DNA of 63,883 nucleotides, counting the filler, from Hyphochytrium catenoides (Eukaryota > Protista > Hyphochytriomycota), in the NCBI GenBank assembly GCA_900088475.1. It is 5 parts of 5 records of this genome, joined end to end, with 100 filler letters (N's around TTAATTAATTAA, not from the genome) between each part and the next. Parts side by side here need not be neighbours in the genome. Positions count along the whole stretch, not along the records: positions 25,340 to 55,991 come from FLMG01002279.1; 4 more parts are not named here. One strand, given 5' to 3'. Shown here one piece after another: positions 37,701 through 55,923 of this stretch (the stretch's first letter is position 1; each line of letters opens with the position of its first letter). A model generated the notes under the pieces. It ran no database searches. It saw only the letters and a program-made list of their open reading frames with translations, and was not told the DNA's origin. The position numbers were made by a program, and so were the translations under genes.

Positions 37701-37964
37701 GATAAAAGAGACATTGGCAGCGAGATTCAGCGAGTCCATCACTCCCTGTTCTTCTCCTAAGTTCGGACCGGTTGCGCCCTGCCATCTTTTGGGCAAGCCC
37801 CAAGCGTCTGGGTGCTTCCGTTGAGCTATGAGGGGAACTTGAAGCAGTTCACGGCTATTACGAAGCGTGGGACCAGCTGAAAGAGCACACTGGGCCAGAT
37901 AGGCCGCAGCTGTTAGTAGAGTTACTCCTAGAGGGCACCATCGGCCCGCTGGTACAGCAAGCAT
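25772..37964 (-). CDS. Signal peptide, four tandem pepsin-family (A1) aspartic protease domains, and a cAMP-receptor-like 7TM GPCR domain
   Basis: Catalytic Asp codons: D1 DTGS 37617-37619 / DTGT 36265-36267; D2 DTGS 35044-35046 / DTGT 33356-33358; D3 DTAS 32315-32317 / DSGL 31026-31028; D4 DTGS 29856-29858 / DTGT 28403-28405. Each domain has CxxC, a flap Tyr, G-h-h-G-[ML]-AF and a hydrophobic-LG motif. 7TM exons 27351-27707, 26678-26927, 26317-26473, 26085-26120 (or -26156) and 25772-25993 splice in phase. The D2-D3 junction (about 32430-32620) is the least certain. Confidence 0.82.
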
Positions 37965-39292
37965 GGCGCTTCAGCAGCTAAATGAGCCTCTTCCTGAAGT
38001 GAGAATCAGCATTAGGGTTGGACTGAAAGACTAGAAAGCAGCTCGTTGTGCCATTAAGAGCAACACTGACGATGGGTACAAGCTAAAGTTGGCCTCATTT
38101 ACAAGGCACCAGAGCTGGTAAGCGCCACAAAAAATCTATCAGCCTTGCCCTAGAGCTCACTTCATCTTGCTGCTCTTTCTTTATTGGTCAGCCTCTTCAC
38201 TATCTTGCGAAGATCTTGATCGGTGCTGCAGGATTCTGATGCCGCCACCGCTGGCCTTCCCTCCTGTCAACATCAAAAAAGAAAGATCTTCAATATCATA
38301 GTGATTATTTCTTTCTTTCCTTCTAATGTTGCTTCAGTCTGGAGAGTGCTGTCAAGTAAATGTATCGCTTCGGAAAAGAAAAGAATATACGCAAAATATA
38401 ATCTGAAACGTTCAAGACAACCTTGTTTGTGCTTCATCTTGTCGCTTATCCTTGAAAACCTTCCTGACTTGTTCGCCCGTTGGACCTATGTTAGGTATTA
38501 GTGTGTGTTGCCAAGGTAGACTTATTACATTGAATCCTACCTTTATATTACAAACAAGTCTTGTGCTGTCACCACTCAACACAAATCAGCCTTGGATTGT
38601 CGTATTACCCGACTTTACTGGATTGGTATCAATATAGCTCTTGAGTGTTACTACAAGGTGCTACCCCTTGTGAACCCTTGAATAATCTCGGTTGACCCTT
38701 GTCCAGTCTTTTCTTCCGTTCGAGGGTTCTACAAGACGAAGAAGTAGATAACTATGTTACCCGGATAGTCTGGATGAAAGGCCGCAGCGCACAAAGCTGT
38801 TATAAAAAGAAGAGATCTCTGCTAAAGGATCTCTTGCCATCTGGCTGATGATGATGGTGAGACTGTTCGCCACATTCTTATCATCATGACCTTCATCATA
38901 CAGCACTTCCTCGTCCTCGGCCTTCTCATGCTCTGCTGCTTCCGTTATTCAAGAAACCTCCTGTCTTCTTGCTAATCTCCTTTCTTTGTGCTCTCAGCTT
39001 TGTATAAAGAGGAACTCAATCTCACTGAACCCTTTCGTTATAGACAGCCTCCTAATCTCTAGCACTATACGAGGACTTGGACAGACATCAGTATCATGAC
39101 ATATTTCTAGAGCACAAGCTGAATCTCATGCTCTATTGACAGAGAGGAAGAAGGTTGTGAAAGCGCAAGAATCCAGCACAGCTCCCGCTGAAGTCTGGGT
39201 GATGATGACAGTGGAGGATGACTGGCCTATTAGATAGGGTTTAAGTCATTGAAGGGCAGTCAAGCGTGTGAATAAGAGCTTATTCAACAGTG

Positions 39293-40924
39293 ATGCAGAG
39301 CACGTCTAAAATACGTTCGCGACTGGCGCAGCAGTTGGGTCAGTCTCGAGTCTTAGAGGACCTAGAGAAGCAGCTGGAGGCCAGCTGCGAGCCGTAAGTC
39401 CTTCCCCGTTCACCCTTCAGAATTTCTCTATCCGCACATTCCGCCTTTGTTTCCTCCTATGTTTGTCCATATCGTTAGGCGCTTACCTTCTCCTATCGGT
39501 CAAGAGGCGAGCAGTAGCATCGCAGAGGTGCATTCTCTTGCTCTATTTTTAACTTATGTTTGTGGACGACTTGGTCAAATCTCTGCGTTCTTGTGCCTTA
39601 TAGCTCGGGTCACCTTTTGATGTGTCAGCCGACTCTACCGGATATCGTGGTGGTGCTTATTAGTGCTTTTTCTACAATACACCAGATCTCCCGAGGAGAT
39701 ATTGAATTCAAGGAGCATCAAGAACAATCTTACCGAGGAAGAGGGAGATAACAACGGAACGATTGATCCAGATCTTCTCCTCTCTGCGAGAGACCTTCCA
39801 TCTGTTTCTTACTACCAACTAGAGGAGAAGACAGCGCCAAAGGATGGAAATAACAAAAACAGCGAAGTAGAGCACGAGCTGGAGAGCTCCTCCACCTTCC
39901 TTTCTTCTGAAGCTGATCTGGAGGAAAGCATGAACGCGGTTTCTTTGTGTCGAGACCTGGAGCAATCCTTGCACTCTCTGGCTAATGAGCTTGGTCACGT
40001 TCAGTTCAACGAAGGTGAGCCTCCTTCCCAACCTTCTCCTTTCCTATCCTGCCATGGCGACGGTAGGCCGTTGGCCTCCATTGGCTACATTTACGTTGTC
40101 TGACTCTTCTGTCGCCCATCTCATAGCCTTCTAAACTCATTGTGGTGCTCGGTCACTTTCTCACTACGTGGACTTTAATCTGACAGCACATGTAGTATCC
40201 TTCTCTAGAGTACACCTTTCGTGCTTCTCTTCGGTTTTCGTTCTGATGGCTCCATACTTTGTTCTATAGGCGAAGAAAACGAAGAACCGCAGCAACTGTC
40301 GGGAAGGATGGAGAAAGAAAGAGGGCCAGAGAGAGTAGGGGCAATTGATGACAACGAACTGCTCTCTGTTTCAGCCTTGATCACGCCTCGTGGGAGAGAC
40401 AAAGAATCTGCACAGCCAGAGCGTCGTCAATCTCGTACTCCGCGGGTACGTTTTGCTTGATTTCAGGAGTTCGAGGGTAGATTATTTTTTCTCTAGGCTT
40501 CTTTCGTATGCCGGTGCACCCATACTTCTCACCAGCCTACTTTTGCGTAACATGTTGGCCTTACGTCTTCTCACTGGACGTCTCACTTTCTTGCGTTCTG
40601 TAGATGCTAGGAGAAGTTCGAACGCGGAGCTCAACTGAAGTTGACATGAGAAGAAGGCGGTCTCCGCTGTTGCAAGATCTCTCCTCGTCTCACACTAATA
40701 ACAACAAAGATGGAGAATACGAGGAATTTCGAAGAGATGGAGAGGCTACAAGACTAGCCTTCCAGCCCTCTGACTTCACTGCTTCTCTTAATCTCTCCCT
40801 GCTCGCCAGCGTCAAGGCTTCTGATGCATCCACTGCATCCAAGTTGTGGACTCCGCAAACAAACAGTGCTCGTAGGCTTTCTGCGCGCTCTTTGGACGCT
40901 ATTATTGACAAGGCCCATGCGTGA
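39293..40924 (+). CDS. Hypothetical low-complexity protein (4 exons, about 310 aa)
   Basis: ATG at 39293 (MQSTSKIRSRLAQQL); exons about 39293-39393, 39685-40014, 40270-40445, 40604-40924 with canonical donors (GTAAGT, GTGAGC, GTACGT) and matching phases. No family recognised. Confidence 0.6.
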
Positions 40925-42867
40925 GAGGAATCAGAAGATACGAGCCCCTCGAAAGCTGCGGCATGAAAGAGATTAATCACTGCCTCTCGCAAGGTTTGTC
41001 CAGGATATTGAAGTAAGGAAGGCGCCTCCTGGTAGAGTCTCTCAGACCAAATTGCTACGATTTTTGATAACGCTTCACGATCGCTGTTGAGGCTACTGCA
41101 TTATCAGGGAGAAACTATTCGGGACAAAGGGGAAAGCATTACCAAGTCCCTCTCGTTGATCCGACGTTCAACTTGAACGGGCTCCTTATATAACAGCCTT
41201 GTACAGATCCATGTTGGTGGCTTTCAATAGTCTTCAGTTATGTCCTTAAAAATGGCAGACGATTTTTAAGTTCGCAGATGGTGAAGCCTTTCGTGAGCTC
41301 CAGTACCCGCTCAGAATCAGTAATCTAGCGCTGCTTCTATCCTTTCATAGCTATGGAGGCGAGGCCCTATGTCCATCGTCTGCGTACGGACAAGAATTGG
41401 CGAAATGGCTCTCAAAGGCCATGAGCGTGGAGGCTTGGCCACAGACTGCCAGCTTAATAGATCGTGAGAGGTGTTTGTGCAACGGGGTCTAGGGAAGGTT
41501 CTCCATAAATAGGTTCTACGAGGCACTCTTCTCAGACACCATGTTCTATTTTACAGCACGGCCTTTCTACCCTTTCGCTTTCTGTGCTGGTGCCATTGTT
41601 CCCTTATACTGAACCCGAAGAAGAACCGAGGCTTGGAAGAATGTGGCTGCCGCTGGAGAGACAATGGCAGAGCCTCTGATGGCCGCTGCGCCGATGATTT
41701 GCTGATGAAGCTGCTTGTCAGTAGTGCAGTGGGGTTGTGCAGTCTCATCAAGATCCAGAGATCTTCGAACTTCGAACAATCTTTCAGCCTTGTGCTGCAG
41801 GTGTGAATCAAGACTGGACTCCGCTCCTATCCTGAATCATTGTAGTGATTATCTTGAATAATAGTTGGGCGTTGCGACCCAAGACCCAAGCCTTGGCTGG
41901 TCTTCCATCAGTCTGCTTGCTGTCCGTCCCCGTGGTTTGTGGTGCTGCTTGTACAAAATTTCCCCACTTTCGGGTCCACAAGAGGAAAGCTTCGGGGAAA
42001 CGTTCGCAACCACTACTTATTAGGGGGGAGTTGAAGCACTTGAAATAAACGAGCGAAAGAAATAAAGGAAGAAGATAACAGTTTTTGCTTCGATCTAGGA
42101 GGTCGCCACTCTTGCTTCGCTCTGTCTGTCCACATTCTCCTTTTTCCTCTGTCTTTACCTCTGTCTCTCTCTCATTCTGTTCTCTGTCTCTCATACCCTT
42201 TCCCTTCCTCTCTATCTGTCTGTCTCTCCCTCTCTGTGCTCTCTCTCTCTCCTCTCTGTGTCCGTGATTTTCCTAACTTTTTGGCTCTTGCGTCCACTGA
42301 GGAAGACATCACTGTCGCATGTCTCTCTCCTCTGTCTAGTTTTGGGCTTAGATCTAAGCTTCTAGAGCCGTAGTTCTTCCGTCTCTGTCTCGCTCTGGCC
42401 CTTCTTGCGCCTCCTGCTGTACAGTGAAGAATATTAGGCTTGTGTCCTCTGGCCATTGGCCTGCTCTGCCGATCTTTTTCTCCGCAGCACCCCTTCGCTG
42501 GCTCTGGCTGCGGCGTGTTCCTACCAAGGCTTCTCTGCCTTTCAATAGTCGCCCGCCTGGCCAAGAAGGCCGTCAGACGAGGATTGCCATGAGAGGACTC
42601 TGACAGAGCATTCAGAGAGACGCAAGGCCGCTGCTATCCTTGAGAACAGTTAGTCTTCGACGGGAGAATGAAGCAAGGCTGAGTTGAGCAACTCTAACTG
42701 GGTCTTCTTTGGGGGAGGCACCATAGCGGAAGGAGCGAGACGGCGGACCCAGAGGGCAGGATCCTCCGTTGGAGGACGCAGAGGGCAGGAACCTCCGTTC
42801 GAGGCAGAATATTTGAGACAGGAAAGAGTAAAAGGAGAACAGAAGGGAAATCGTCTGCACTGGAAAG

Positions 42868-45800
42868 ATGCAGTGCATGATGACCCCAGCCAAACGGCGC
42901 ACCCTTCACGGTGCAGCCAAGCGACCTCGCGTCTTGGGAGAGGAGAACCGGCAGGTGGGGCAGCGCATCTCTGTGAAAGGTGCCTCAGTGCACCTGACAG
43001 AGGGTATGAAGTGCTTCTCTAAGGACAAGCCGAAGAAAGCAAAGTATATCAACTCTCCAAGGGCGACGATCAAAGGTCAGTAGCGAGACACTCCTTCCAG
43101 AGCCTTTCATTATCCTTTGGGGACGTGTTTGTTCTCAGTAATCTACCCGGCGTTGTTTCGCACCGACTCCCCTTGCTTCGGCTTCCTTCTCCTCGCTACT
43201 CCTTCGATAATTTGCATTGTTCAGAGGCCTTATTCTCTCTGTTGCCTTCGCTCTCCATCGGGATGTCCACTCTCCTTAAAGATATCATGCCACCGCAATG
43301 TCTGGAGCAAGTGCTCCTCAGGGTGACGTCTCCCTATCACATTCCGTTTTAAGTGACTGATATAGCCTACCTTCGACGCTCTTTCAAACCATATGAAAGT
43401 CAACCGTAACCTTAACCCTTATGATTTTTGGGTCCGCTCTCTTCTCGTCTCTGTTTGTTTGCCGCCCAGATGGATTCTACTGGCTTCAATCGCTAGGACT
43501 TGGGCCCCTTTGCTTTCTGGGCTTTGTCTGCTATAATCTCCTGGTTTTGGGCTTCGGTCTTGGCGTATTAGCTTGTGGCTCCGATCCGATGTAAGTCTTA
43601 GGAAGAGTAGCGGAGTAGAATGTCCCCAAAATTGAGGCGGCATACTTTGGATGAAATGACGGCGAGATCAAATGAGCACGAGAGCTGTTGATGAGATCGC
43701 TCCGCGAGGCAAAGGGCCGAGATGGGCTCGATCAATCAAATCCAAAGGAGCTTAACGTCGTTAGGGAAGCAAGATATAGCTTAACTCTGGGAAAGGTTCG
43801 AAGAAAGTTGAATAAGAAGGAGGGGAGGACAGATCCCCTTGAGAGGCATGAAGAGTGGAGCAACCCTCATTCTAGACTCACTCTCCGTCCACAGCAAAAA
43901 CTTTTGGGACGCCTACAATATGTCCTTCCAGACGTTTGCAACAATAGGTTAGTCTGGTGGACATCTTTCGCTTCTCGATCCTGACTTCTCCCGCTCTGCT
44001 CCTGCCCTCTTGTCAAGGAGCCAGCTCTATCTCTTTCTGAGTCATCATAGGGTCTATTTCATCCACACACGACCTTTTCCTAAGTCTCTCGTATCTATAG
44101 GCTATGGATATCTATACCCGTCTGACGAATGCAGCAACATTGTAATCTCAGTGGAGTCGACGGTCGCAGTGCTCTACGTTTCCTTTTTCATTGGCGTCGT
44201 CTTCGCGAACGTCACTAGACCAACTGCAGCTATCCAGTTCAGCGAGGTATTCTTCTCTTCGTGATGGACCCCCTTCATCTCTCTTCTCTAGGTCTTCTCC
44301 CATGTTGAAGGGGGAGTACGTAATGAACTCTCATGCTGATTAACATGTGTTTGCGCGGAGTTTCTCCTCTACCAGTACCTGAGATGGCCTAGCCCTTGTG
44401 ACATCCTGATGCTAGGAAGAGCTGGCTTTCTCGGGGGAAACACTCAATCTGCCTTTGTCTTCTATCTTGCCCTATCGCCTCCTAGCGTCACCTACTTCTT
44501 TTATCTAACAGGGATGTCTTTGATGTCGGTGCCTAACATCCAGGTCTATACAATGTCCTATATTGGTGGCAAGCTCTGTATGGTGGTTCGTGTTGTGAAT
44601 TGTCATTTGTCTCCCCGCTTTCACAACGGAGAGCTCATTGAGGTAGATTTCAAGATGAAAGTGAGCCGCCTAGAGGTACGATAGGATATATGGATTCATT
44701 CTCATTGCTCGGCGCCTACCTACCTTTCGCTGTCTATGAATTCTATGCTCTCTCCCCTTCTTTCTTTCTTGCCTGACAGTTCCTGGTCCTCATCAGATCT
44801 TCGCATCGTCCTTTCGTTTTCGTCGTTTCTTTTTTCTCCCCATAAGCGCGACGATGGTGGTAATCTCAAGATATACAAGTACAACTTGAAGCTTCTGAAC
44901 AACAGCTTCCTGACTTTTAGGTGCGTAGAGCGTGGCGGATCGTCTTTGCTGCTGTTATTGTCTCATCCCGCTGTAAGAAGTTGTGGAGAGGGGCCATAAG
45001 AATAATTACCTCCCTAACTCATGTCTGGTTGCTATTGGTCTTTCCTTTCTGAGGTCTTTGTCCCTAGGCATCTGTTGACCTCTAATCTGTCTTCCTCGTT
45101 GTCCTCAGGACCTCGCTGTGGTTGGTACATCCTATTGGAAAACAGAGCCCTTTCTATGGAATGTCAGAGGAGGTAAGGGTACATATTGCTTAGGATACGA
45201 AGTTTTCTGTCCTCTGAGTCTGCTGACGTTCTTCATGACAGACCTTCAAGAAGCAAGATATGATGATTGAGGTTATCATGACGGGTAACGCTTGCATCGG
45301 ACGCTTTTTCTTTGCCTCTTGGATTTCGTGTTGTACCGCTTGTAGCTATTTTCCTGCTCACCCCTGCTCTGCTCCAACTTTCTCAGTTCCCTGACCATTC
45401 CTCGTACCATCCTCTAATTCCCACCCATCTAGGAGTCGACCTCACTGTTCAAGACACCGTGGCCCAGATGCACACATATTACCCGGAAGACAGTAGGTGG
45501 CATCAGCGGTAAGAGACCGAGTAGCTGCGAACGCTGCATTGTGCCGCCTTTGATTCGGGCTCCGTTCGTAATCCTACCCTCAATGGGGTACTCAGACCGT
45601 CTGCATCCGCGCTTCTATTCTGTCACCTTCGACAGTCTGTGCGTTCTCATCTCTTTCCTTCCGCGTACTCGGACTAACTTCATCTGGCCTTAGGTTCGTC
45701 CGCATGGGAAGCTTTTCTCTCAGGGGTAGGGAGATAATTCAAGACTTCTCCAAGATTGACGTATTGGAGGCTGCACCGTTGAAAGGACAGCGAACCACGT

Positions 45801-48800
45801 TGGCCCAGTTGCAGATGGCGTCCACCCCATTGGCTACTCACAAGGAGGGGAAGAAGGAGGATGTAAAGGAGAACGAGGGAACAACCAACACCGTCCCGAC
45901 TGCAGGGTAGGTTCAAATGGGAATAAGAACATGGATACCAAGGTCCAGGAAGATAGAGTGGCTCATGTGAGCGAGAAGAAAAGGCGCACAGACTGCGTGA
46001 GTGGGCTCAAAGTAGAAGCGTCGAAGACTGGAATTATGAAAAGGGAGAAAGATTCATGAAAAAGAGAACATAGAGGGTCAAGGCGTAGTGCGTTCTTGCA
46101 TCTCCTGCTTGCTCTTACTTCCTGAGGTACATAGTGCCGTGAGAGCACTCGGCAGTGATGTTACTGACTATCTTCCTCTAACCACGTTCTGGCAGCTCGA
46201 CGGACGGCGAGAGTGAGGGCCGAGAAAGTGCTGAAGAAACGGGAGAAAGGAATTGCACTGAAGAAGAAAGGGAGGATGAAGCACTTCGACAAGAGCTGAT
46301 GGCGGAGGAAGGCCCAGGCGCCCTCGAAGAGTTCCCTTATGCCGCGTCGCACAAGAGACTCACAGAGTTTGACATCTATCAGTACGTTCGCACCGCTTCC
46401 TTCTCTCATAAATTGAAACCACTCTGGACCAGATGGAATTTTATGACGCTTTTTATCAGATTTCTTGAAAAAGGCTATTCCTAAGCAAGAAGATCACTAT
46501 CGTTACAGTGTCCTGCTGCGACCCAACTGACCTAGGCCCTTATAATTGTTGTCACAGACGATGGAATTCAGATACAGGGAGTCGACAGGACTCAAGGGGA
46601 AGGGGAGGGGAGAAAGGACGGCCCCGAATTCCTACCTTTTCTCCTACGCAGCCACCTTCTGCATCTGACAGTACCTATAAGTTCATGCCCTCACCAACCA
46701 CTCCCACCATTCCAGAGCTACATCACGCAGACTCGTCTCTCTCTGTCAACTCCACGAGGACCGAAGAAGACAGAAAAATGGAAGAGGAACGCAAGGCCAG
46801 GGCTGAAGTGGATGCAGAGAGGGCGCAAAAGACAGTTAGTGACTACGCCGCTCTTCTTCTAGCGCGCCTGACTGCCGAAGACGAAACGACTTCACAGTAC
46901 TCTGCCCAGCACAGCCTAAAGGCAAAAAAGGGTGGAGAGCATAGGGGCCCGCCTCGGCGCTTTTTCTCTTATGCGCGAGACCTCCATCCTGGGGAAGAAG
47001 AAGAAGAGGAGGAAGAAGAAGATGAGCTCCCTATTCTGTAAGTACAAGAGCATGAGAGAATCTTCGTTTGTCTATCTGATCTTCACTTTCAGCCCGCGCT
47101 TTTCTTCGAGTATGCCGCCCTAACAGCTGTTTCTAACGTTGTTTGTCCATCTCTCCGACTGTACTCCCTCTTCGCTTTTGTCTGTCATTACACAGGCCAC
47201 AGATGGTCCGTACGACCAATCGCAAGGGTTGGCTATTTCGCTATGGCAGTGTCTACTCTCTTCTGATGGGTCTCAAGTGGGGGCCTCTCCTTGTCGTCAC
47301 GCTCTTCCTATACTGGGGGTCAATAACAATATTTGCCCTGTTCTACTATATTGAGGTACCCGAGCCTTCTGCACTTCATATTCTTCTCCATGTCTGAGCT
47401 CTCAGCTGATAATCTCTTACAGCGGATGTTCTGTAAGGTTATATCCTTTGCGCCTCTCCTCCTCCTTGAAATGATGCTAGAAGGTTGATTGTGCTTAAGT
47501 TATCTCTCTCCACGCCTGTCCATGGCGGCCCCTCTCTATCTTGTGTCGGGTCACGCAGAAATCTCCTACTCAGCTCTTGCATGTTCGTAGGCGGAGGATG
47601 TGGGAAAGAACTTCCAGTCGGCCGAGCCTATGGGAACTTTTACCCGGTGTCTCTATTTTAGTGTGCACACCATAACCACAGTTGGGTAAGAACTGCAGAC
47701 GAGAAGCGCGGAGCGTACAGATCAGTCAAAATGTTAAGGTGCACCTTCGCAGAGGCATTCGATTGAAAGGAAGAGGGAAAAAAACATGAAGTACAATTTA
47801 TGGGGAGATGAGGAGCTGGCTGTGTGGGTGTGGGAGAGAGAGAGAGAGAGAGAGAGAGAAAAGAGTAAGAGCAACGATACAGTTTCTGACGTCTGACGCC
47901 TATTGCTGGTTAGGTACGGGATCCTCTATCCCAACCCAAGCGGCCACTTCATTAATATTCTGGTTCTGCTGGAGACCTTCACCAGTCTCTTTATTACCAC
48001 GCTCATGACAAGTTAGTAACTGCTACCCTTTGCATTTCTTCCCCCAGATCAGAGGCAGGCTTGGCACGTCGTGGCGTCGTCTCTGCTAAGCATACATGTC
48101 TTTGGAGAATCTATTGAAAGTTTGTCTGCTCTGTCTGGTTGCTCCTCCCTATAGCACCACACCAGTTTCGCCCATCTGGAACTCCACCCTACCACTTTCT
48201 CTTCAATGATTTTTAAGACAGTAATCGGTTGTGCTCTTGCTCAGGTGTTACATGGAGCAAGGCTTCCATTCCTAAGGGCAAGCTACTATGGAGTCAAGAA
48301 GTAGTCTTTGCTCGAAACCACAAGGGACAGAGGGTCATGCAGTTTCGCTGTGCAAACCTAAGACCTCTAGGAGAAATGATACAATGTTCCTTCAGGTATC
48401 CTCTTGAGGCCTGCGAATTCCGTGTTGACAAGCTTTGGCTGCCTTTGTTGCCTCTCATATTGATGCATGACTGAGTCCACAACTTCCTTCTTCACAGTAT
48501 GCTACTTCTCCGATCTCCTTCCTGTTCAACCTGTACAAACTTCCTTCAACCGCAGTTCTACCTGCAGGTCAAAGTTCTCCTCTGAGGTGCTGTTCTTCTT
48601 CGGCTATGAAATCCTCTAATTGTTGCCCTTTGATGCCCTTATCCTTTCCGCCCCCGCCCTCATATTTCGCCGATTGGCTCACGACTCTGCACGTCGTAGG
48701 GTCTGCATTGCCTCGACAAACTCGTACCATGGCCTTCGTTTGGGCCTTCAGGACCTGACTCTTACGGAGTCTAGCTTTCCAACCTTCCATCATCCAGCCC

Positions 48801-49303
48801 TTTTAGAGCATGTTATCACGAAGGATTCTCCGCTCTATGGCATATCTTTTGAGCAGCTGAGAGAGGGAGGTGAGATTCTTGCTAAACAGCTCTGTTTGCC
48901 TTACCCCGTATTTTTGGATGAGTTTATCGGCCATGGACTAGTTAGTACCAATCTCTTTTGGATCGGCTCCCAATGCAAAGAGAGACGGAGAGAGATGGGG
49001 CTAAATTAGTCATTAGCATGCAAGCAGCAACTGCTACACCACTTCTGACGCCTCTCTCTCAACTTAGGGTGCATCATCCTGGCGCTCTTTACAGGTTTTG
49101 ATACAGTGTATCATGACACAGTGTACTGCCGCCACACCTACGTCTACAAGCAGTTCACTCAGAAGAAAGCTTTCAGGAAGTGTCTTAGCTTTATTGAGGG
49201 AACTGCGGTGGTGGACTTCGCCCGATTTGACGCAATACATAGAGAGGACAGAGAAGAGGAGGAGAAACGAGAAATAGGACCGGGGGGTCTTTCACCCATC
49301 TAG
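42868..49303 (+). CDS. Tandem two-repeat inward-rectifier K+ channel (Kir-linker-Kir)
   Basis: Repeat 1: IKDGFYWLQSL, M1, SFQTFATIG|YG filter (about 43894-44110), M2 ending VFANVTRP, cytoplasmic HPIGKQSPFYG and DFSKID. Repeat 2: VYSLLMGLKW, M1, FSVHTITTVG|YG (about 47591-47920), QFRCANLR, HVITKDSPLYG, VDFARFD. Linker exons about 46197-46381 and 46558-47037 join in phase 2 at every junction. Start codon uncertain. Confidence 0.85.
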
Positions 49304-51253
49304 CGCCCATGGAAAGAAGCTCTTATAGCTTCGCCAAGGTGTACTAGGTAGGTATATAGGGCTAGTGTACGAATGTTAACCGTAGGCTGAGGATGCAGCG
49401 CTACAGAAAGCTCGTCCGCTTGCCGTTTCTCCTCTTAGGCACGTTCCGTACCATATCTGAACCCCTTTAATGCGCATACTAGCTCCCGACACATGTACAA
49501 CTAAGAATATAATACACAGCTGCTACTAGTAAACGCCTGTAAAAGCGAGTGACATGACTTGAATGACTATATCAGCCCGTCGCCTCATCATCTGCAGCCA
49601 CTCTCTGCAGACCTCAGCGCGGCTCCAGCGTCCTGCACTTTCCCCTTGTTTTTTGCTAGAGATAGGATGATACCAATGAGCAAAACAAGGCCAAAAGGCC
49701 CAACGCCGTTGGTGCCTCAGCAACAAAGAGAAGAATGCCCGCCCATGGCTCCCATCATTCCCGATAAGATAAGGCAAAACATGTACTTGTAAAACGGTAG
49801 TTGGATGAGTGTCTTGAAGCGCCGAAGGTGCGTCAACTGGCGGACTCCCAATGTTCAGACAGGGCGAGAAGTCGCTAACCGCACTACTGGTGCGTACACT
49901 TTCTGAAAGTGTTGTGTCACTAGTAAAAATACTTTGACATGCCTCGTGCGCACATTCTCTGGCGGCAAAAGAAAGGCGGACTGAGTAGTCAAATGTCCAA
50001 CCCTCCAAGTCAAAAAAGTGCTGTATAAGAAGGATGGTGGAAAGAGGAGCCGAAGGACTATCATAAAACGAATTGAGAATACCTTAGGTTGATACCTGTA
50101 ACAGGAATCGCATTAATATACCAAGGTAGGTTTTTGGACGTGGAGTCTTTGAGGCATATTGTGACACTGTCACTGTATAGCGACTATTAGAGGACACTGA
50201 GGCACAATCAAGCCAGTCAAGCTTTCAGTTGGTGCATCACGCTGACAAATAGGCTCTTGGTGGCGTATCCTCTGGTAAATTGTTCATCACCTATATAGGT
50301 AATGTGGATAAGGGCGGCATATTATTAGAAAGATGGGGGTGACCAATGTAGAGGATAAAAAAGTTAGCTCCTTCGCTGATTGGACAGGACTAGCCAATCA
50401 ACACTAAGCGGTTAATCAGTAGGGTATTATAGCCTCTCTGGGTGTCTTTAAGCCTTACAAGGCGGCCTACGTTAGGCTAATTGCGTCTGTTGATGGAATC
50501 ATGGTGGCTACAGGCTGGTCTCGCTCTCTCTCTCCGCTTGCTGGCTCTGATGATCTCTTTAGGTATCTCTTCTCTCTCTCTCCTCATCTCTCTCTCTCTC
50601 TCTCTCTCCTCTTTCTCTCCCTCTCTCTCTTTCTCTTTCTCTCTCTCTCTCACCTCCACTCTCTCTCCCTCTTCCCCCTCCTCTCTCTCTCTTTCTCTTG
50701 GTGGCTCTCTTTCTCTGTTCACCTTTCTCTCCCTTATCACACAATGAACTGTCTTGCTGGCTCTCTTTTCTTCTCTCCTTCCATCATCCTTGGTATCTTA
50801 CTCCATCTCTCATTCACCCTCTCTCTGTTCTATTTCCTATTTCCTCTCTCTCTCCATTCTCTCTCACACACTCCAGTCTCTCTATTGCTGTCTCTCACCT
50901 TCTTCTTCTCCTGTCCAGGTCCCTTCTCTACTGTGTCCGTCATCTTTCTGGCTCCTAACGCCCTCTCCTCTTCAATGCAAATTTGTATTCCTCTCAGCAC
51001 TTCAAGCACTGAGAGTACCCTCGTTGTCTCTTGCTCATCTTTGCTTTCTTACTCTCTCTTCGCAGTTCGTTCACCTGCCGCAGACAGATCAATCTCCTCT
51101 CTTCTTCCCATCACTTTGTGACAATAGCGGGCCTGCATCCGGCTGGCCTGACGCCAATTGGCGTCTTTCTGAAGCAGAACAGTGCCTTCAGCTTTAGTGC
51201 TTTGCTGTGTGACTGAGGAGGTATTGCTGTTTGTTAAGAGAAAGAGGGAAATA

Positions 51254-53622
51254 ATGGCTGACAGAGAGGAAGTACTCGAGGAGATGGTTCCTTTGCTAGG
51301 GAACATGATCGAGCCTCTCGTGCCCTATATGATCCAGCTGCTAGGTCCACTCTACCTGGTGCTGAAAAGCTTTCGACTCCATAAGAAGAGACTCCAGGTC
51401 CGTGTCGATTAGAATTTCTTCTTGAGGTTTAGCTGCTCTCATCCCCGTCCTCCCTGACGCTGTCGTCCTCTCTTCTCTCCTCCCCTGCTCTGATTCTTCA
51501 GCAGCTCCTGTTCTGTCCTCAAACTCCATCCAAGCCGAGCCTCATGGCACTCTTCTTCTCTCTTCTCGTCTCCTTGTCGTGGCCTGACGTGATGTTCAAT
51601 TTGATAGTTTCCACAAAGAATTTCTGGCCTTTCCACTTTGGAAGCTGGGGCTCCTACACGATTAGTTCCTCGACCCTTTGCTGGCGCTGGCTCTTTTGGT
51701 CTCTTCATCTCCGCCCTTCTCCCTGTCTGACGCACTCTCTCTGTCTTGTCTGTCCTGGCATATGAAAGGAGGAGATCTTTCGCTTCATTTGGGGGCCATC
51801 GGAACATCCCTTCCATGTGATCTCCTTTATCAACGGACGGAAGAGAGATGCAAAGCTCTCAGCCGTGGAATGGAGAAGCAAAACTTCTGTCCCTCGGCCA
51901 CTGCCAGAAACTGCTGGGGCCCTGCAGCTCTTCGCTGCCTACTTCCCAAGCGAAATAGAGGGGAAGCAAATCGAGTCAGAGCTGAGTAAGTCAGTTAGAT
52001 ATGGAAACAGATCAACAAAGAGAGAGGAAGAGACAGAAAGTAGAAAAGGAAAGAGGGAGCGGGAGAAAGACTGTCTATTGCGAAGAGTTAACAAGAGGGA
52101 GAGAAGGGTAGGGATAAGAGAAGATACAGAGATTTGATGCGTTGACTATTCTGCCGATTAAGGAGTCGTCAGAGTCTCTCTCCCTGACAGCGGAGCCTCT
52201 AAGCGCTCTCCATCTTCAACTGCTCTCTTCTTTCTCTCTTCTCTCTCTCTCTCTCTATGCCTCTCCCTCTGTCTTCATTGCATTGTGCCTACTCACCCTT
52301 CCAATTGCTTTTCTATCTAGGATTCCGCCTTAACGGGTTCTTCCCTCCCATGGAGATCTTGAAGTTTGCTGCTTTCTACGGGGAGATGGTATATCGAGGA
52401 TATCCGACAACTCTGCTGAGGTAGAGTGCCTTAGCAAGCCTCTCTCTGAGTTGACAGTTAGTTTCTCCCTTGCCCTATGGCATCTTGCTCCCTACTCCAG
52501 CTTGTTGCCACCTGATACCTCGTTGGTTTCTCCCAGTGTCTAGCTCCACCTCTAGCCTTTTTCCTTCTAAGACTCTTTGCTTCTTTTCTATCTCTCACTG
52601 CAGACAAGTCTTTGAGGAGCGATTTCCCCGTTCCAAGCTCTTCTTAGACAACATCATGAAATGGAAATACATCTCCTTCTATCAGGAGGAGCCTGCGCTA
52701 GGAAGCAGACCTCCAGCCTATAGGAACCTTAGGATCCGGATTCCGGCAGATAAGCAGGGCCTAAGAGAGCTCTATCCTGGGTATTCCACCTCCACTTTCT
52801 CCTCCTTCTCTCAGTTTCTTTGCTAGGGTCATTCCCAAGCCCTACTGTTACCAATTTGTATTTCTCTCCCTCTTTCTCTCTCTCCCACTCCCTCTCTCCT
52901 TTCTCCTTTTTTCCTCCGTCTCCCTGTGTCTCATCTCTTTTTCTTTCTGTTTCTTCTCTATGTCATGCTGCTCTCCTGTCCCTTCTATCGGCTGACCCAA
53001 GCTTACATAAGATCTTTCGGCCTTCCAGCCCTTAAGAGCTTTTCTTACCTCCTACCTCCTTAGAAGTCATTACCATTCTACCTTAATCGACATCGCTGTT
53101 CTTCCTGATGTTCACTTCGCCTATCCTTGCTTGCATACTCTTTTTCTATCTCTCTGACATGTTCATCTTGTTGTTGCCTGCCGCTCTTCAGTATGGGAGA
53201 GCTCCTGTCTTTCTTGAAGGAGGCGACTTTCCGCGTGATGGACGAGAGTCAGTCGAAGATGTTGGCCATGGTCAAGATCAACTCAGCAGCAGTGATGGAG
53301 ATCTCCATGTAAGCGCTACATACTTCTCTTCTCTTTCATCTTCTCCAGTTCAACCTAATCTCTGTCTCTCCAGTTCAAGCTATTCTCTGTCTCTTCACTT
53401 CTCTCTGTTTTCTTTATTTCTCCATCTTCAAGCTCCTTCTCTTCCTTGTACCCTCTTTTCTCTTAATGGACCTTGCCTGAGAGTCTGATGCCTTCAGTGC
53501 TAACCGCCTTCTCCTGCCAAATATTGCCTTGCACTACGGCTCACAGGACTGTGAACAAGGACGGCCTTGTGTGGCTGGATACTGATGGCAATGTATATCT
53601 TACCTCGTCTCTTTCTGNNNNN

Positions 53623-53662
<40 letters not shown>

Positions 53663-54051
53663 CCTGCAGTTTTCTTAGCTACGCCCCTACGCTTCTTGAT
53701 CCTGCTTGCCTGTGCTGTATCAGTTGGTCTTTTCCGTCTCTACTCATCTCTTCTGCCTCTTTCCTCTTCGTATCTCTGGAATCTCACGTTTGTCTCCTTC
53801 CTCAGACTCTTCTTCAACGTGGTGCACCAGTACCTTTTACCGTTGGAGACGGTGGACGTCTGATTGTGCTTGTGGAGGCCAAAATTCAAGTCGCTCTTAT
53901 TCTCTCTGTAGCTCTTCCTAACATTGTCATCCAACTTGACTATGATCTTGAGCGGTGGGATCATACCTGCTGTCGGTCGCCCGTCCGTCTTCTTCGCTAT
54001 CTCATCTCTCTCTCTTTCCCTCGTTCTCCTTTCTGTCTCTCTCTCTCTCTG

Positions 54052-54088
<37 letters not shown>

Positions 54089-55923
54089 TTCTTTCTTTCC
54101 TTCTTCCTATCTCTCTATCTCTCTCTGTGCCTTTCTTCTGTTTCATTCTCTTGTCTGTAGCAGATGTTCCTCCTCATTGCATCTCTGCGGACATATCAAG
54201 TATTAGTTCCTTAGCCCATCACCTGATTTCAAGGACGATGTCAACCTCAGTCTCTTATCTCTCTCTCTCTATCTGTTTTTCCTTTCTCCCATTTCTTTCT
54301 GTCCCTTCTTTGTTGCGCAGGCACTCTAAAGGGATGGACGTCTACTTCTTCATTTCCCTTCTGGACATTGCTTCCTCTTTCACTGATAAAATGGCAGACC
54401 CTGTCTTCCCTGTCTCCAGAGTTAAGAGAATGTTGAAAGAGTCGCTCGAAGTCAGAGCGACGCTTAAAATGGGACCGATGGGAGACGAATGTAAGATATA
54501 ACTTGGGCTCCATTGTATGCCATCTGCTCTTCTCTGTCAGATGTACCCATTGGAGACCCTAAACGTCCACTTGGTCTGCCATTCCTTCAACTATCCCTGT
54601 CTTTTTCTCTTCCCCTTGGTATCTCTGTCTCTCTCTCTGTCTCTCTCTCTCTGTTTCTGCGGGCATGCTTGTACTGTCATTCACTCTGTTCATCTGCCTC
54701 TTTCGGTGCACTGTCTGGCAGCCTCTCCATCAGTCTCTCGTCTCCTCTTTTGGACGCTTTATTCCCTGACTTACACGGTTCCAATCGCCTATGCTGGATC
54801 CTTAGGCGGGCGTTTGACTATCAAGAAAGAGAAGGAAGTAAAGGAAGAAGACAATAATAGATCCACTGGCGGGTTCATGCGCACTCTTTCTATGCGGGCA
54901 GTAGCATCACAAAAGACTGTGGCGGCTAGTACGGACCTGTGGGTGTTAGGGGTAGACGCAGACTTCAACGTAAGCCTCTTATGCCTTCGGTCTTTCTTCT
55001 CTCTCTCTCTCTTTCTCTCTCACACAGTGTGTATGTGTCTCTCTTTCTCCTAGTTTCTCTGTCTCTCTTATTTTCTCCGTATCTTCTTGCTCTCTCTCCC
55101 TCTCTGTCCTTCCTATATATATATAGAGGGACGATCTTTCCATATTTCAACCCCACTTTCCTGCCTTCTCATTGTCCTGAAGCTCCGGGGGCTTTCCGGC
55201 CACAATGACAATTTTGTCCATCCTAAGACGTCGTCTTTCGATAAACCTGCTGTTTCCTCTCTCTCACGTCCTTCTCTCTTCCTGCGGCGCCCTCCGATAC
55301 CTCAGTGGGTGAACCACATTCCAGCCATCTTCTCAGCATTCCTGCGCGGTTACCTAGGAAAGTTGCTGGTAGATCTCATGGAGATACTCTATGACTTCTT
55401 TAGAGCGTCATATGTGGATTTCCTGAGACTCTATGAGGTGAGACGATGCAGCTAGACAGAGAAGAAAAGAGCTGAGAACTGGGAAAGGAAGGCGAGAAAA
55501 CGCTATGTTGACCTGAGCGCAGTGCATCTCATCCATCTTTCCTCTCTTTCCTCTACGACCCACGTTGTCTCGCTTTCTTTTCTCTGTTCTCTCCCCTGGT
55601 TATGAATCAACTTCCACCTCCAGGAAACTCGGGTCACAACCTTCGAGGAGGCATTGTCTCGCACTATGTCCCGCGTCCAGCTCCGTCCATCCGAAGGCAG
55701 AAGAAAGAGCGTAGACATCGATGAGGAAGAGATAACCTCCGGCGAAGTTGTAGGAGAGTTCGACAAGCACAAGAGCGTTGGAGAGATGGAAGGAGAGAGA
55801 AAGCACCAGCTTGTTTGGCTCATCTTCTTGGGCTTGTTGGGCTTCGTTTTGAACTATCTTTATCTACAGCTATCCTCACAGGCGACCTCTATTTATATTC
55901 TTGTTGCTAGTTGGATGAGATGA
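51254..55923 (+). CDS. Hypothetical multi-exon protein with a C-terminal transmembrane segment
   Basis: Phase-compatible exons from ATG 51254 (MADREEVLEEMVPLL...; RFRLNGFFPPME; QVFEERFPRSKLFLD; GLRELYPGMGELLSFLKEATFRVMDE; WVLGVDADFN; WVNHIPAIFSAFLRGYL) ending LVWLIFLGLLGFVLNYLYL..WMR*. Some internal junctions (53890-54810) are unresolved. No family recognised. Confidence 0.7.

Follow-up and report, generated by a model that had tools for sequence, protein, structure and literature searches.

The window analysed here, a stretch of 63,883 nucleotides of Hyphochytrium catenoides DNA (filler included), carries two complete inward-rectifier K+ channel (Kir) units, arranged head to tail (+ strand; 42868-45907 and 47196-49303), which, judging from the sequence, probably belong to one fused gene (42868-49303) encoding a tandem Kir protein of ~901 residues; we put the probability of this reading at about 0.78. 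Each unit combines an IRK pore with an IRK_C cytoplasmic domain, and both are intron-rich. That the two form one protein is likely because their water-mould relatives are demonstrably fused. Textbook classification of K+ channels knows the tandem-pore architecture only from K2P, TOK and TPK.

In the fused model, the gene has 18 exons and 17 introns (Table 1), and the frame that joins its parts through three phase-2 junctions is open over 2703 nt, or 901 codons. All 16 Kir exons are open and bounded by GT-AG borders, ten of them in repeat 1 (ATG 42868 to 45907) and six in repeat 2 (47196-49300, followed by TAG 49301-49303). The pore module M1-P-M2 with a T-x-G-Y/F-G filter is present in both units, as is the β-rich IRK_C domain directly after M2, the exons of which are colinear with positions 200-395 and 684-854 of the tandem profile described below. 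Both filters are intact and interrupted by an intron: the codons T-I-G|Y-G of filter 1 (TIGYG; 43941-43947 and 44101-44108) at 43947|44101, and T-V-G|Y-G of filter 2 (TVGYG; 47678-47685 and 47914-47920) at 47685|47914. An earlier note on this DNA had described two complete Kir units with exactly these filters, and exon borders, filters and colinearity with the tandem profile all bear it out. An aspartyl protease is encoded next to the locus; PDB and ESM Atlas matches to it carry no taxonomic information, and Rfam gave no hit on the whole piece.

Table 1. Exons of the two Kir repeats and candidate exons of the linker, in window coordinates
Feature	Position	Strand	Evidence and remarks
Repeat 1 exon 1, N-terminal cytoplasmic segment	42868..43075	+	ATG 42868; donor aag|GTCAGT; 3' end phase 1
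Repeat 1 exon 2, slide helix and M1	43470..43590	+	Frame links exons 1 and 3; donor GTAAGT; hydrophobic M1
Repeat 1 exon 3, 53-nt micro-exon, pore helix ..SFQTFATI-G	43895..43947	+	Pfam Ion_trans_2 on ORF segment
Repeat 1 exon 4, rest of filter (G)YGYLYP, M2, IRK_C start	44101..44246	+	Pfam IRK 7.6e-5
Repeat 1 exons 5-9, IRK_C β-rich domain	44544-44675, 44847-44920, 45109-45172, 45242-45284, 45433-45508	+	tblastn
Repeat 1 exon 10, IRK_C end ..DFSKIDVLEAAPL and 39-residue tail	45694..45906	+	Candidate donor GG|GTAGGT at end
Candidate linker exon L1, 186 nt, acidic	46196..46381	+	Open frame 46182-46481; phase 2 to 2; contains ATG 46299
Candidate linker exon L2, 480 nt, Ser/Pro/Thr- and Glu-rich	46558..47037	+	190-codon stop-free segment 46469-47038; phase 2 to 2
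Repeat 2 exon 1, strand ..PQMVRTTNRKG, slide helix, M1	47196..47355	+	tblastn
Repeat 2 exon 2, pore helix ..YFSVHTITTV-G	47591..47685	+	Pfam Ion_trans_2 0.0011; profile 633-649
Repeat 2 exon 3, rest of filter (G)YGILYP, M2	47914..48011	+	tblastn and tandem profile
Repeat 2 exons 4-5, IRK_C first half	48245-48395, 48700-48869	+	tblastn to oomycete repeat 2; Pfam IRK_C 0.013
Repeat 2 exon 6, IRK_C second half, acidic tail, TAG 49301-49303	49068..49303	+	phmmer; profile 792-854

Behind both filters the context is x-L-Y-P without Arg (GYGYLYP in repeat 1, GYGILYP in repeat 2), just as the earlier note had read it, and in this the window differs from the solved Kir structures. By inspection, the Glu-Arg pair behind the filter is missing altogether: no Arg follows GYG, and the presumed place of the Glu in the pore helix is taken by Gln in repeat 1 and by His in repeat 2, in the window as in the oomycete consensus. 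The Gln/His and post-GYG positions presumably correspond to Kir2.1 E138 and R148, going by residue numbering rather than a computed alignment.

Within repeat 1, the N-terminus (..PAKRR..) is similar to that of the oomycete relatives (..ASKKR..), and the micro-exon 3 aligns to positions 126-142 of the tandem profile. Exon 4 has 41-45% identity to oomycete repeat 1 in tblastn and finds KirBac3.1 as its best sequence match in the PDB. Exons 5-9 (44544..45508) align in order to profile positions 200-339 and contain tblastn matches such as YNLKLLNNSFLTFR with 79% to Phytophthora repeat 1 and GVDLTVQDTV.. with 58%. The two repeats of the window share only ~30-59% identity with each other, and this over short stretches; a recent tandem duplication was considered and rejected, since the repeats are weakly alike and more similarity connects each of them to its oomycete counterpart.

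An in-frame TAG at 45908-45910 follows repeat 1 and, as had been claimed for it, is overlapped in the sequence by a donor (agg|GTAGGT); splicing there would leave an exon with 45906 as its last, phase-2 position. Four other exons of the locus that finish in phase 2 (at 43590, 45508, 47037 and 47685) likewise read through into G|TAA, and because the stop has the same form as these, we read it as the probable start of an intron. From there, three junctions, all in phase 2 (45906|46196, 46381|46558 and 47037|47196), would carry the frame through L1 and L2 into repeat 2; these junctions exist as had been proposed. The linker that they define comprises 259 full codons with 22% D+E and 25% S+P+T, in good agreement with the acidic, Ser/Pro-rich linker of roughly 250 residues noted before. 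The splice path through the linker and its exact exons are, for the window, predictions from sequence alone.

We scored these sites with splice position weight matrices (PWMs) trained on 14 local introns, giving percentiles relative to all such sites in 42600-49600. The junction between L2 and repeat 2 is strong (donor in the 91st percentile, acceptor 47195 in the 94th), and the open segment of L2 stops exactly at its GTAAGT donor. The first two linker junctions score no better than the weakest members of the confident intron set, with donor 45907 in the 86th percentile, acceptor 46195 in the 60th, donor 46382 in the 86th and acceptor 46557 in the 48th. A branch-like CTGAC motif is located ~30 nt 5' of both weak acceptors, compared to 8% of background AG sites, at -31 for L1, which also has CTAAC at -17, and at -30 for L2. 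Other in-frame paths are available, for example 45862|46652 in phase 0 or the direct junction 45906|47196; such paths are easily found because the local donor consensus is loose. The gap 45911-46195 contains four to six stops in every frame. In a codon-usage log-likelihood model trained on 630 local codons, L1 scores +0.12 per codon versus about -0.3 in introns, but the signal of the linker is weakly positive regardless of frame and does not discriminate. The linker motif EPLFEPLL..GTQR, conserved in oomycetes, was searched for in the window linker and not found there, and the linker ORF gave no match in an index of 5.8e9 proteins, with candidates limited to proteins of 105-332 residues.

A further argument for fusion comes from related proteins. 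When repeat 2 exon 6 was compared by phmmer to 1.84e9 representative proteins, only two matches were obtained (E 4.8e-6 and 6.1e-5), and both are oomycete proteins carrying IRK+IRK_C twice. With an 805-residue protein of Aphanomyces invadans as query ('hypothetical protein, variant 1', P0001), 55 of the 61 proteins found were tandem Kirs with two filters; they have 634-1065 residues, a range that includes the 901 of the window, and come from Aphanomyces, Saprolegnia, Achlya, Pythium, Phytophthora, Peronospora and Bremia. Among them are a 997-residue protein of Phytophthora infestans (P0032) and an Achlya hypogyna protein annotated as 'inward rectifier K channel (IRK-C) family protein' (P0006). 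The earlier note had suggested looking for Pfam IRK and IRK_C twice on one protein, and this is what the oomycete relatives have, with IRK_C scores of 5e-29 and 6e-31; on the window, where single exons were scored, the matches are weak (IRK 7.6e-5, IRK_C 0.013). In this two-repeat family, which is conserved and universal in oomycetes, the domains follow the same order as in the window and a long low-complexity linker lies between the repeats. Diatom clusters of 577-615 residues in the ESM Atlas are candidates for the same architecture.

From the 55 oomycete tandem Kirs, we built a tandem profile and compared the window to it exon by exon. Repeat 1 exons align on positions 126-395 and repeat 2 exons on 633-854, in order, a colinearity far beyond chance. 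The exons also distinguish between the two halves of the oomycete proteins: repeat 1 exons 3-9 score higher against oomycete repeat 1 than against repeat 2 in 49-54 of the 55 proteins, and the opposite preference, for oomycete repeat 2, is shown by repeat 2 exons 2, 4 and 6 in 52-55 of them, by exon 4 in all 55. In total, the half of the same type wins in 49-55 of the 55 proteins for 10 of the 16 exons. Repeat 1 exon 2 and repeat 2 exons 1, 3 and 5 are ambiguous in type, and the two terminal repeat 1 exons lean weakly in the right direction. Both tblastn and the order on the profile agree with these scores, by which repeats 1 and 2 of the window are orthologous to oomycete repeats 1 and 2, respectively. 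Signatures common to both are S.QT..TIG, YNLKLL.N.F.TFR and GVD.T.QDTV in repeat 1, and SVHT..T(I/V)GYG, WSK and AL.TG.D in repeat 2. The distance from filter to filter is ~555 residues in the window, compared to 347-686 in oomycetes.

The window protein is nevertheless a distant member of this group. Identity to the oomycete tandem Kirs is only ~30-45% per exon, and filter 1 is TIGYG in the window, but mostly TIGFG in oomycetes. A closer relative or annotated ortholog was not found by protein, profile and metagenome searches: the protein libraries searched contained no near-identical protein, the metagenome scans with window exons gave no relatives, and a degraded profile, made from the A. 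invadans 805-residue protein and the window exon rows, returned known oomycete proteins only.

In the relatives, the joining of the two repeats can be read directly from the genome. A single uninterrupted exon of A. invadans (L001 6001-7701) encodes residues 1-567, that is, repeat 1, the linker and M1 of repeat 2; because this one exon reaches from repeat 1 into repeat 2, their fusion in A. invadans is a genomic fact. In Pythium insidiosum, a stop-free frame of 793 codons spans both repeats. Whereas the oomycete fusion thus lies inside one exon, fusion in the window would proceed via splicing across a stop, and the window gene has 17 introns compared to four in the A. invadans gene. Three of the five repeat 2 introns share codon position and phase with the latter: the intron after exon 1 (phase 0, same position as A. 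invadans intron 1), the one 3' of exon 3 (phase 1, same codon as intron 2) and the one between exons 4 and 5 (phase 2, in an Arg codon, as intron 3). The proposal of the earlier note that one polypeptide contains two Kir repeats is thereby strongly supported at the level of the family, through the fused oomycete ORFs, and continues to be a prediction for the window itself.

An alternative interpretation of the locus is that it comprises two adjacent genes, one for a 377-residue Kir ending at TAG 45908 and a separate one for repeat 2, which would start at ATG 46299 or at a Met in L2 (46681 or 46778) and yield roughly 330-490 residues with a long disordered N-terminus. This would represent either the unfused ancestral condition or a secondary fission of a tandem gene, and a heterotetramer of the two products would still be conceivable. 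The in-frame stop is what this interpretation can cite in the first place, but, as described above, it is shaped like the other phase-2 exon ends of the locus. The in-frame ATG 46299 in L1 would give a repeat 2 product of ~490 residues; it has, however, a pyrimidine at -3 and an out-of-frame ATG upstream (46276), and the 388 nt from the TAG to this ATG would have to accommodate a 3'UTR, a poly(A) site, a promoter and a 5'UTR; on its other flank, ~4.9 kb separate the locus from the next gene start. Separate genes would also fit the weak PWM scores at the junctions flanking L1, and from the stronger donors 45967 and 46127 an intron of the 5'UTR might run up to 46195. Against this, every relative found is fused, and order, strand and adjacency kept over such divergence are what one expects of fused rather than of free genes. 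On this evidence, we consider two separate genes unlikely.

A fused gene might in addition give rise to shorter products, by intron retention or early polyadenylation, given a stop that coincides with the donor, to a subunit with repeat 1 only, or by skipping of L1 and/or L2 to tandem subunits with linkers of ~40 to ~260 residues. Donors 45906, 46381 and 47037 can each be joined in frame to any downstream acceptor (46196, 46558, 47196), and the linker length of the oomycete proteins varies widely, as seen from their filter spacing of 347-686. The argument is purely combinatorial, though, and three junctions selected for preserving the frame would agree in phase by chance with a probability of ~1 in 9, so that we hold such isoforms to be a rather doubtful addition to the fused gene. 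Decay of one or both units into pseudogenes seems highly improbable, as does an assembly artefact behind the arrangement, given 16 of 16 open Kir exons with GT-AG borders, intact filters and ordered matches to the tandem-Kir profile at 126-395 and 633-854; the low identity between the repeats also argues against an artefactual or recent duplication.

Per unit, the window protein has the same fold elements as KirBac3.1 and KirBac1.1 and as animal Kir2.2, Kir3.2 and Kir6.2, namely a slide helix, M1-P-M2 and the IRK_C β-domain. In the AlphaFold2 model of the 805-residue A. invadans protein, both Kir units fold and the linker is disordered; compared to known structures, the oomycete model is closest to KirBac3.1 (TM 0.75-0.87, 28-29% identity), then to Kir2.2, Kir6.2 and GIRK2. 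KirBac and animal Kirs have one repeat per subunit and assemble as homo- or heterotetramers, whereas the window protein, if fused, has two repeats. The premise of the earlier note that Kir channels are built from single-repeat subunits is incomplete, as dozens of two-repeat Kir proteins are already present in public databases, apparently undescribed. A fused window gene would share two pore domains per polypeptide and a dimeric pore with K2P, TOK and TPK and with the viral Kpov (PMC13715775). Beyond the generic pore, which is all that Ion_trans_2 matches, there is no sequence kinship to K2P, TOK and TPK; these lack the Kir cytoplasmic domain, as had been pointed out, and all family matches of the window are to IRK and IRK_C. 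K2P channels are without IRK_C and in animals possess a cap helix, whereas each pore domain in the window has a Kir cytoplasmic domain of its own.

Linked Kir subunits are known to be able to form working channels from engineered concatemers, such as dimeric Kir2.1 (PMC2860589) and Kir4.1-Kir5.1 tandems (PMC2229613), in which the connection of C-terminus to N-terminus fixes the stoichiometry. Those constructs are laboratory-made and have short linkers, while the tandem described here would be natural and ancient and consist of two diverged, paralogous repeats. In a search of the literature, we found no paper on natural tandem Kir channels save for a remark on a Kir homologue of Toxoplasma gondii, XP_002369151, with four transmembrane domains and a filter seen only in the second pair, which its authors did not treat as a tandem channel (Prole and Marrion 2012, PMC3283738). 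This protein possibly has the same tandem architecture, and one may speculate that a missed micro-exon, comparable to the 53-nt exon 3 of the window, could explain why its first filter is absent. The origin of the tandem K+ channel architecture was still called unknown in 2026 (PMC13715775).

The predicted product of the window gene would comprise a repeat 1-type Kir (TIGYG), a probably disordered, acidic and Ser/Pro/Thr-rich linker of ~260 residues, and a repeat 2-type Kir (TVGYG). We infer that, in the window as in all oomycete two-repeat Kirs, two such polypeptides dimerise, such that a pseudo-fourfold K+ pore and a ring of four IRK_C domains would both consist of repeats 1 and 2 in alternation, the outcome being an obligatory 2:2 heteromeric channel; K+ selectivity and gating are likewise presumed.

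A natural Kir concatemer shows that the Kir family, too, arrived at the tandem-pore solution and kept its cytoplasmic domains, and the window gene, if fused, would stand for an independent origin of this architecture. In a broader and tentative picture, which we think has less than even odds, tandem Kirs would be an old, conserved and undescribed class common, shared introns included, to oomycetes and the intron-rich lineage of the window, perhaps also to coccidia, in which the two-pore-domain architecture originated independently of K2P, every pore retained a cytoplasmic domain for gating and the gene fixes the 2:2 composition of two diverged repeats, with the window locus additionally providing repeat 1-only and variable-linker subunits. 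A naturally fixed 2:2 heteromer would lend itself to work on asymmetric filters (a Gln or a His behind the filter; TIGYG/TIGFG versus TIGYG/TVGYG) and gating by a heteromeric cytoplasmic ring. As a class, the IRK genes of P. infestans are induced ~five-fold in spores, in a study that does not single out the tandem genes (PMC5322657); with this induction and its presence throughout the oomycetes, among them major pathogens of crops and fish, the tandem Kir family is experimentally accessible. The window would extend the tandem Kir family to a second, far more intron-rich lineage.

The window consists of intron-rich eukaryotic DNA with a GC content of about 0.46-0.54. Reading 42600-49600 in three frames, with each junction checked on the DNA, revealed two Kir-like units on the plus strand, the first (repeat 1) comprising ten exons with GT-AG borders and the selectivity filter TIGYG, the second (repeat 2) six exons and the filter TVGYG. 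In both repeats an intron lies inside the first Gly codon of GYG (43947|44101 and 47685|47914), in phase 1 in repeat 1 and in phase 2 in repeat 2; a single ancestral intron that has slid by 1 nt could account for this, as could parallel gain. Gene predictors could miss an exon as small as the one encoding the pore helix of repeat 1. Window sequences were searched exon by exon, and the Pfam scores of single exons (IRK, 7.6e-5; IRK_C, 0.013; Ion_trans_2 on pore-helix exons) are weak because the exons are too short. Each unit belongs to the Kir family, as its pore module and IRK_C domain show, and the locus is not related to K2P, TOK or TPK channels.

Exons of the Kir locus, candidate linker exons and introns shared with the Aphanomyces invadans tandem Kir locus (L001)
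Feature	Window position	Strand	Remarks
Repeat 1 exon 1	42868-43075	+	
Repeat 1 exon 2	43470-43590	+	
Repeat 1 exon 3	43895-43947	+	53-nt micro-exon, carries pore helix
Repeat 1 exon 4	44101-44246	+	
Repeat 1 exon 5	44544-44675	+	
Repeat 1 exon 6	44847-44920	+	
Repeat 1 exon 7	45109-45172	+	
Repeat 1 exon 8	45242-45284	+	
Repeat 1 exon 9	45433-45508	+	
Repeat 1 exon 10	45694-45907	+	then TAG 45908-45910; exon end 45906 if spliced onward
Linker exon L1	46196-46381	+	186 nt; acceptor 46195, donor CA|GTACGT at 46382
Linker exon L2	46558-47037	+	480 nt; acceptor 46557, donor CT|GTAAGT at 47038
Repeat 2 exon 1	47196-47355	+	
Repeat 2 exon 2	47591-47685	+	
Repeat 2 exon 3	47914-48011	+	
Repeat 2 exon 4	48245-48395	+	
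Repeat 2 exon 5	48700-48869	+	
Repeat 2 exon 6	49068-49300	+	then TAG 49301-49303
Shared intron, after M1	47355|47591		L001 7701|7746; phase 0
Shared intron, codon before (I/V)(A/T)WSK	48011|48245		L001 7938|7982; phase 1
Shared intron, Arg codon after (S/H)F	48395|48700		L001 8129|8178; phase 2

On one side of the locus, at 27000-38000, the minus strand carries an array of pepsin-like aspartyl protease genes (PF00026), at least three in number and arranged in tandem. In ORF 37365-37970 the first of them has a start like that of a signal peptide, together with the catalytic DTGSS motif; C-terminal exons with W(I/V)LGD.FL..Y.T.FD lie near 35.5, 32.8 and 27.6 kb. An unknown gene may lie between these proteases and the Kir gene, where the plus strand (39621-41100) has two open segments, one of 160 codons and one of 106. 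On the other side, 50400-55000 is rich in CT/GA microsatellites over long stretches, where the strands are strongly skewed (GC skew to -0.37, AT skew to -0.51). It also holds a short N run near 53.6 kb and, at about 54400-54500 on the plus strand, a short exon-like ORF with ..ADPVFPVSRVKRMLKES.., which we take to be reminiscent of a histone-fold (NC2/DPB4-like) N-terminus.

Between the two Kir units, a candidate donor (agg|GTAGGT) overlaps the TAG at 45908, and an exon ending at 45906 would do so in phase 2. Joined through L1 and L2 to repeat 2, the latter via acceptor 47195, the exons have a summed coding length of 2703 nt, or 901 codons, with all three linker junctions in phase 2 and a linker of 259 full codons (22% D+E, 25% S+P+T). 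As the junctions, phases, 901-codon frame and linker composition are all present in the DNA sequence, the earlier note's observation of a stop on a donor and three phase-2 junctions in one frame holds as written.

Searched against 1.84 billion representative proteins, the last exon of repeat 2 yielded only two significant matches (E = 4.8e-6 and 6.1e-5), from Aphanomyces invadans and Pythium insidiosum, each with 33% identity and two matched stretches, and each carrying IRK and IRK_C twice per polypeptide. The 805-residue Aphanomyces protein (P0001) as query retrieved 61 proteins, 56 of which have two filter motifs; counted without a bacterial LtrA fusion, the two-repeat family spans Aphanomyces, Saprolegnia, Achlya, Thraustotheca, Pythium, Globisporangium, Lagenidium, Phytophthora, Peronospora, Bremia and other genera. 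The eukaryotic two-filter proteins are 530-1065 residues long, with filter 1 mostly TIGFG, filter 2 TIGYG or TVGYG, and a spacing of 347-686 residues; the three eukaryotic single-filter matches are truncated calls of the same tandem architecture on short contigs. The oomycete fusion is independent of gene prediction: one unbroken exon of A. invadans (L001 6001-7701, residues 1-567) takes in the whole of repeat 1 and the linker as well as repeat-2 M1, and both repeats of P. insidiosum lie in one frame of 793 codons that has no stop. When the Aphanomyces protein was modelled with AlphaFold2 from a 48-sequence alignment, both Kir units folded well (pLDDT about 75-92) and the linker (residues 357-525) came out disordered; the model's top structural match is KirBac3.1 (TM by target 0.75-0.87, 28-29% identity), followed by Kir2.2, Kir6.2 and GIRK2.

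The oomycete linkers, otherwise variable and disordered, contain a conserved (M)EPLFEPLL..GTQR motif (P0001-P0059; residues ~418-436 of P0001), at whose Met the gene calls P0057 and P0058, on short contigs, begin; the motif was sought in the window linker and not seen. Two bacterial proteins (P0060 and P0061, 696-713 aa) represent a different Kir fusion architecture, an LtrA membrane domain (PF06772) with a single Kir unit (IRK/IRK_C).

In tblastn searches with eight family members, repeat 1 aligned with the first window unit and repeat 2 with the second, confirming the exon borders; YNLKLLNNSFLTFR is 79% identical to Phytophthora repeat 1 and GVDLTVQDTV.. 58% identical to Pythium repeat 1. 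When single exons were compared by blastp with 55 family members split into their two halves, repeat 1 exons 3-9 scored better with oomycete repeat 1 in 49-54 of the 55 proteins, and repeat 2 exons 2, 4 and 6 with oomycete repeat 2 in 52-55; four exons were ambiguous, and the two terminal repeat-1 exons leaned the correct way, weakly. Matches of the window exons to a profile built from these 55 proteins follow one another without a change of order, exon ends abutting, and cover positions 126-395 and 633-854. Three residues ahead of the filter Thr, repeat 1 has Gln and repeat 2 has His, in the window and the oomycete consensus alike. Three of the five window repeat-2 introns agree in codon and phase with the A. 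invadans gene, which implies an intron-containing common ancestor of the two genes. The two window repeats resemble each other weakly. The division into repeat types, the sequence in which they follow one another and some of the gene structure are therefore older than the split of the window lineage from oomycetes.

The earlier note had proposed a single polypeptide. This stands for the relatives, the two repeats being one protein in every one examined; for the window we favour a single fused gene with a probability of about 0.78, and put even odds on the note's exact three-junction path being the one used. Repeat order, strand and adjacency are conserved between window and oomycetes, which favours fusion, as it is expected from a fused ancestor and hard to keep otherwise; fused length and filter spacing also fall within the family range. 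The TAG at 45908 resembles four internal phase-2 exon ends (43590, 45508, 47037 and 47685), where reading on past the exon runs straight into the G|TAA of the intron itself. Since L2 lies in a 190-codon stop-free segment ending exactly at GTAAGT, and its junction to repeat 2 combines a 91st-percentile donor with a 94th-percentile acceptor (PWM), coding sequence certainly exists upstream of repeat 2. That repeat 1 and repeat 2 are instead two adjacent genes, the second of which could start at ATG 46299, seems unlikely: the gap between the TAG and this first possible downstream start is just 388 nt. On the other side of the locus, the nearest gene start, that of a pepsin-like gene read in the opposite direction, is about 4.9 kb away from ATG 42868.

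What counts against the fused path is that the remaining linker sites (PWM percentiles: donor 45907, 86th; acceptor 46195, 60th; donor 46382, 86th; acceptor 46557, 48th) rank with the weakest of 14 confident introns or lower; the linker codon-usage signal is also weak, and ATG 46299 could serve a separate repeat-2 gene. In favour of fusion, a CTGAC lies about 30 nt ahead of each of the weaker acceptors, 46195 and 46557, a motif present at 4 of the 14 confident introns versus 8% of other AG sites (looser CTRAY: 7 of 14 versus 14%), and 45911-46195 contains four to six stops in every frame. Because donors are loosely defined in this locus, other in-frame paths exist, among them 45862|46652 (phase 0, acceptor 98th percentile) and a direct 45906|47196 join. 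Protein and metagenome searches found no closer relative or annotated ortholog of the window gene.

Both window filters are followed by x-L-Y-P, as claimed earlier, and lack the Arg after the filter; Gln or His takes the presumed place of the pore-helix Glu. These Glu and Arg positions presumably correspond to Kir2.1 E138 and R148. Because of both changes, filter stabilisation may differ from that in animal Kirs. Two tandem polypeptides would form one channel, in which repeat 1 and repeat 2 would alternate round the pore, and likewise round the ring that the four IRK_C domains make. That linked Kir subunits can give working channels is known from engineered Kir concatemers (PMC2860589, PMC2229613).

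The closest kin of the window locus, the oomycete two-repeat proteins, are found in public databases under generic names. A full-text literature search found no paper on them, and the single relevant statement concerns a four-TMD Toxoplasma homologue (PMC3283738); a 2026 paper on tandem K+ channel origin leaves Kir tandems unmentioned (PMC13715775). The tandem Kir sequences are public and their architecture seems to have gone unrecognised. With the window, this architecture probably reaches a second, far more intron-rich lineage.
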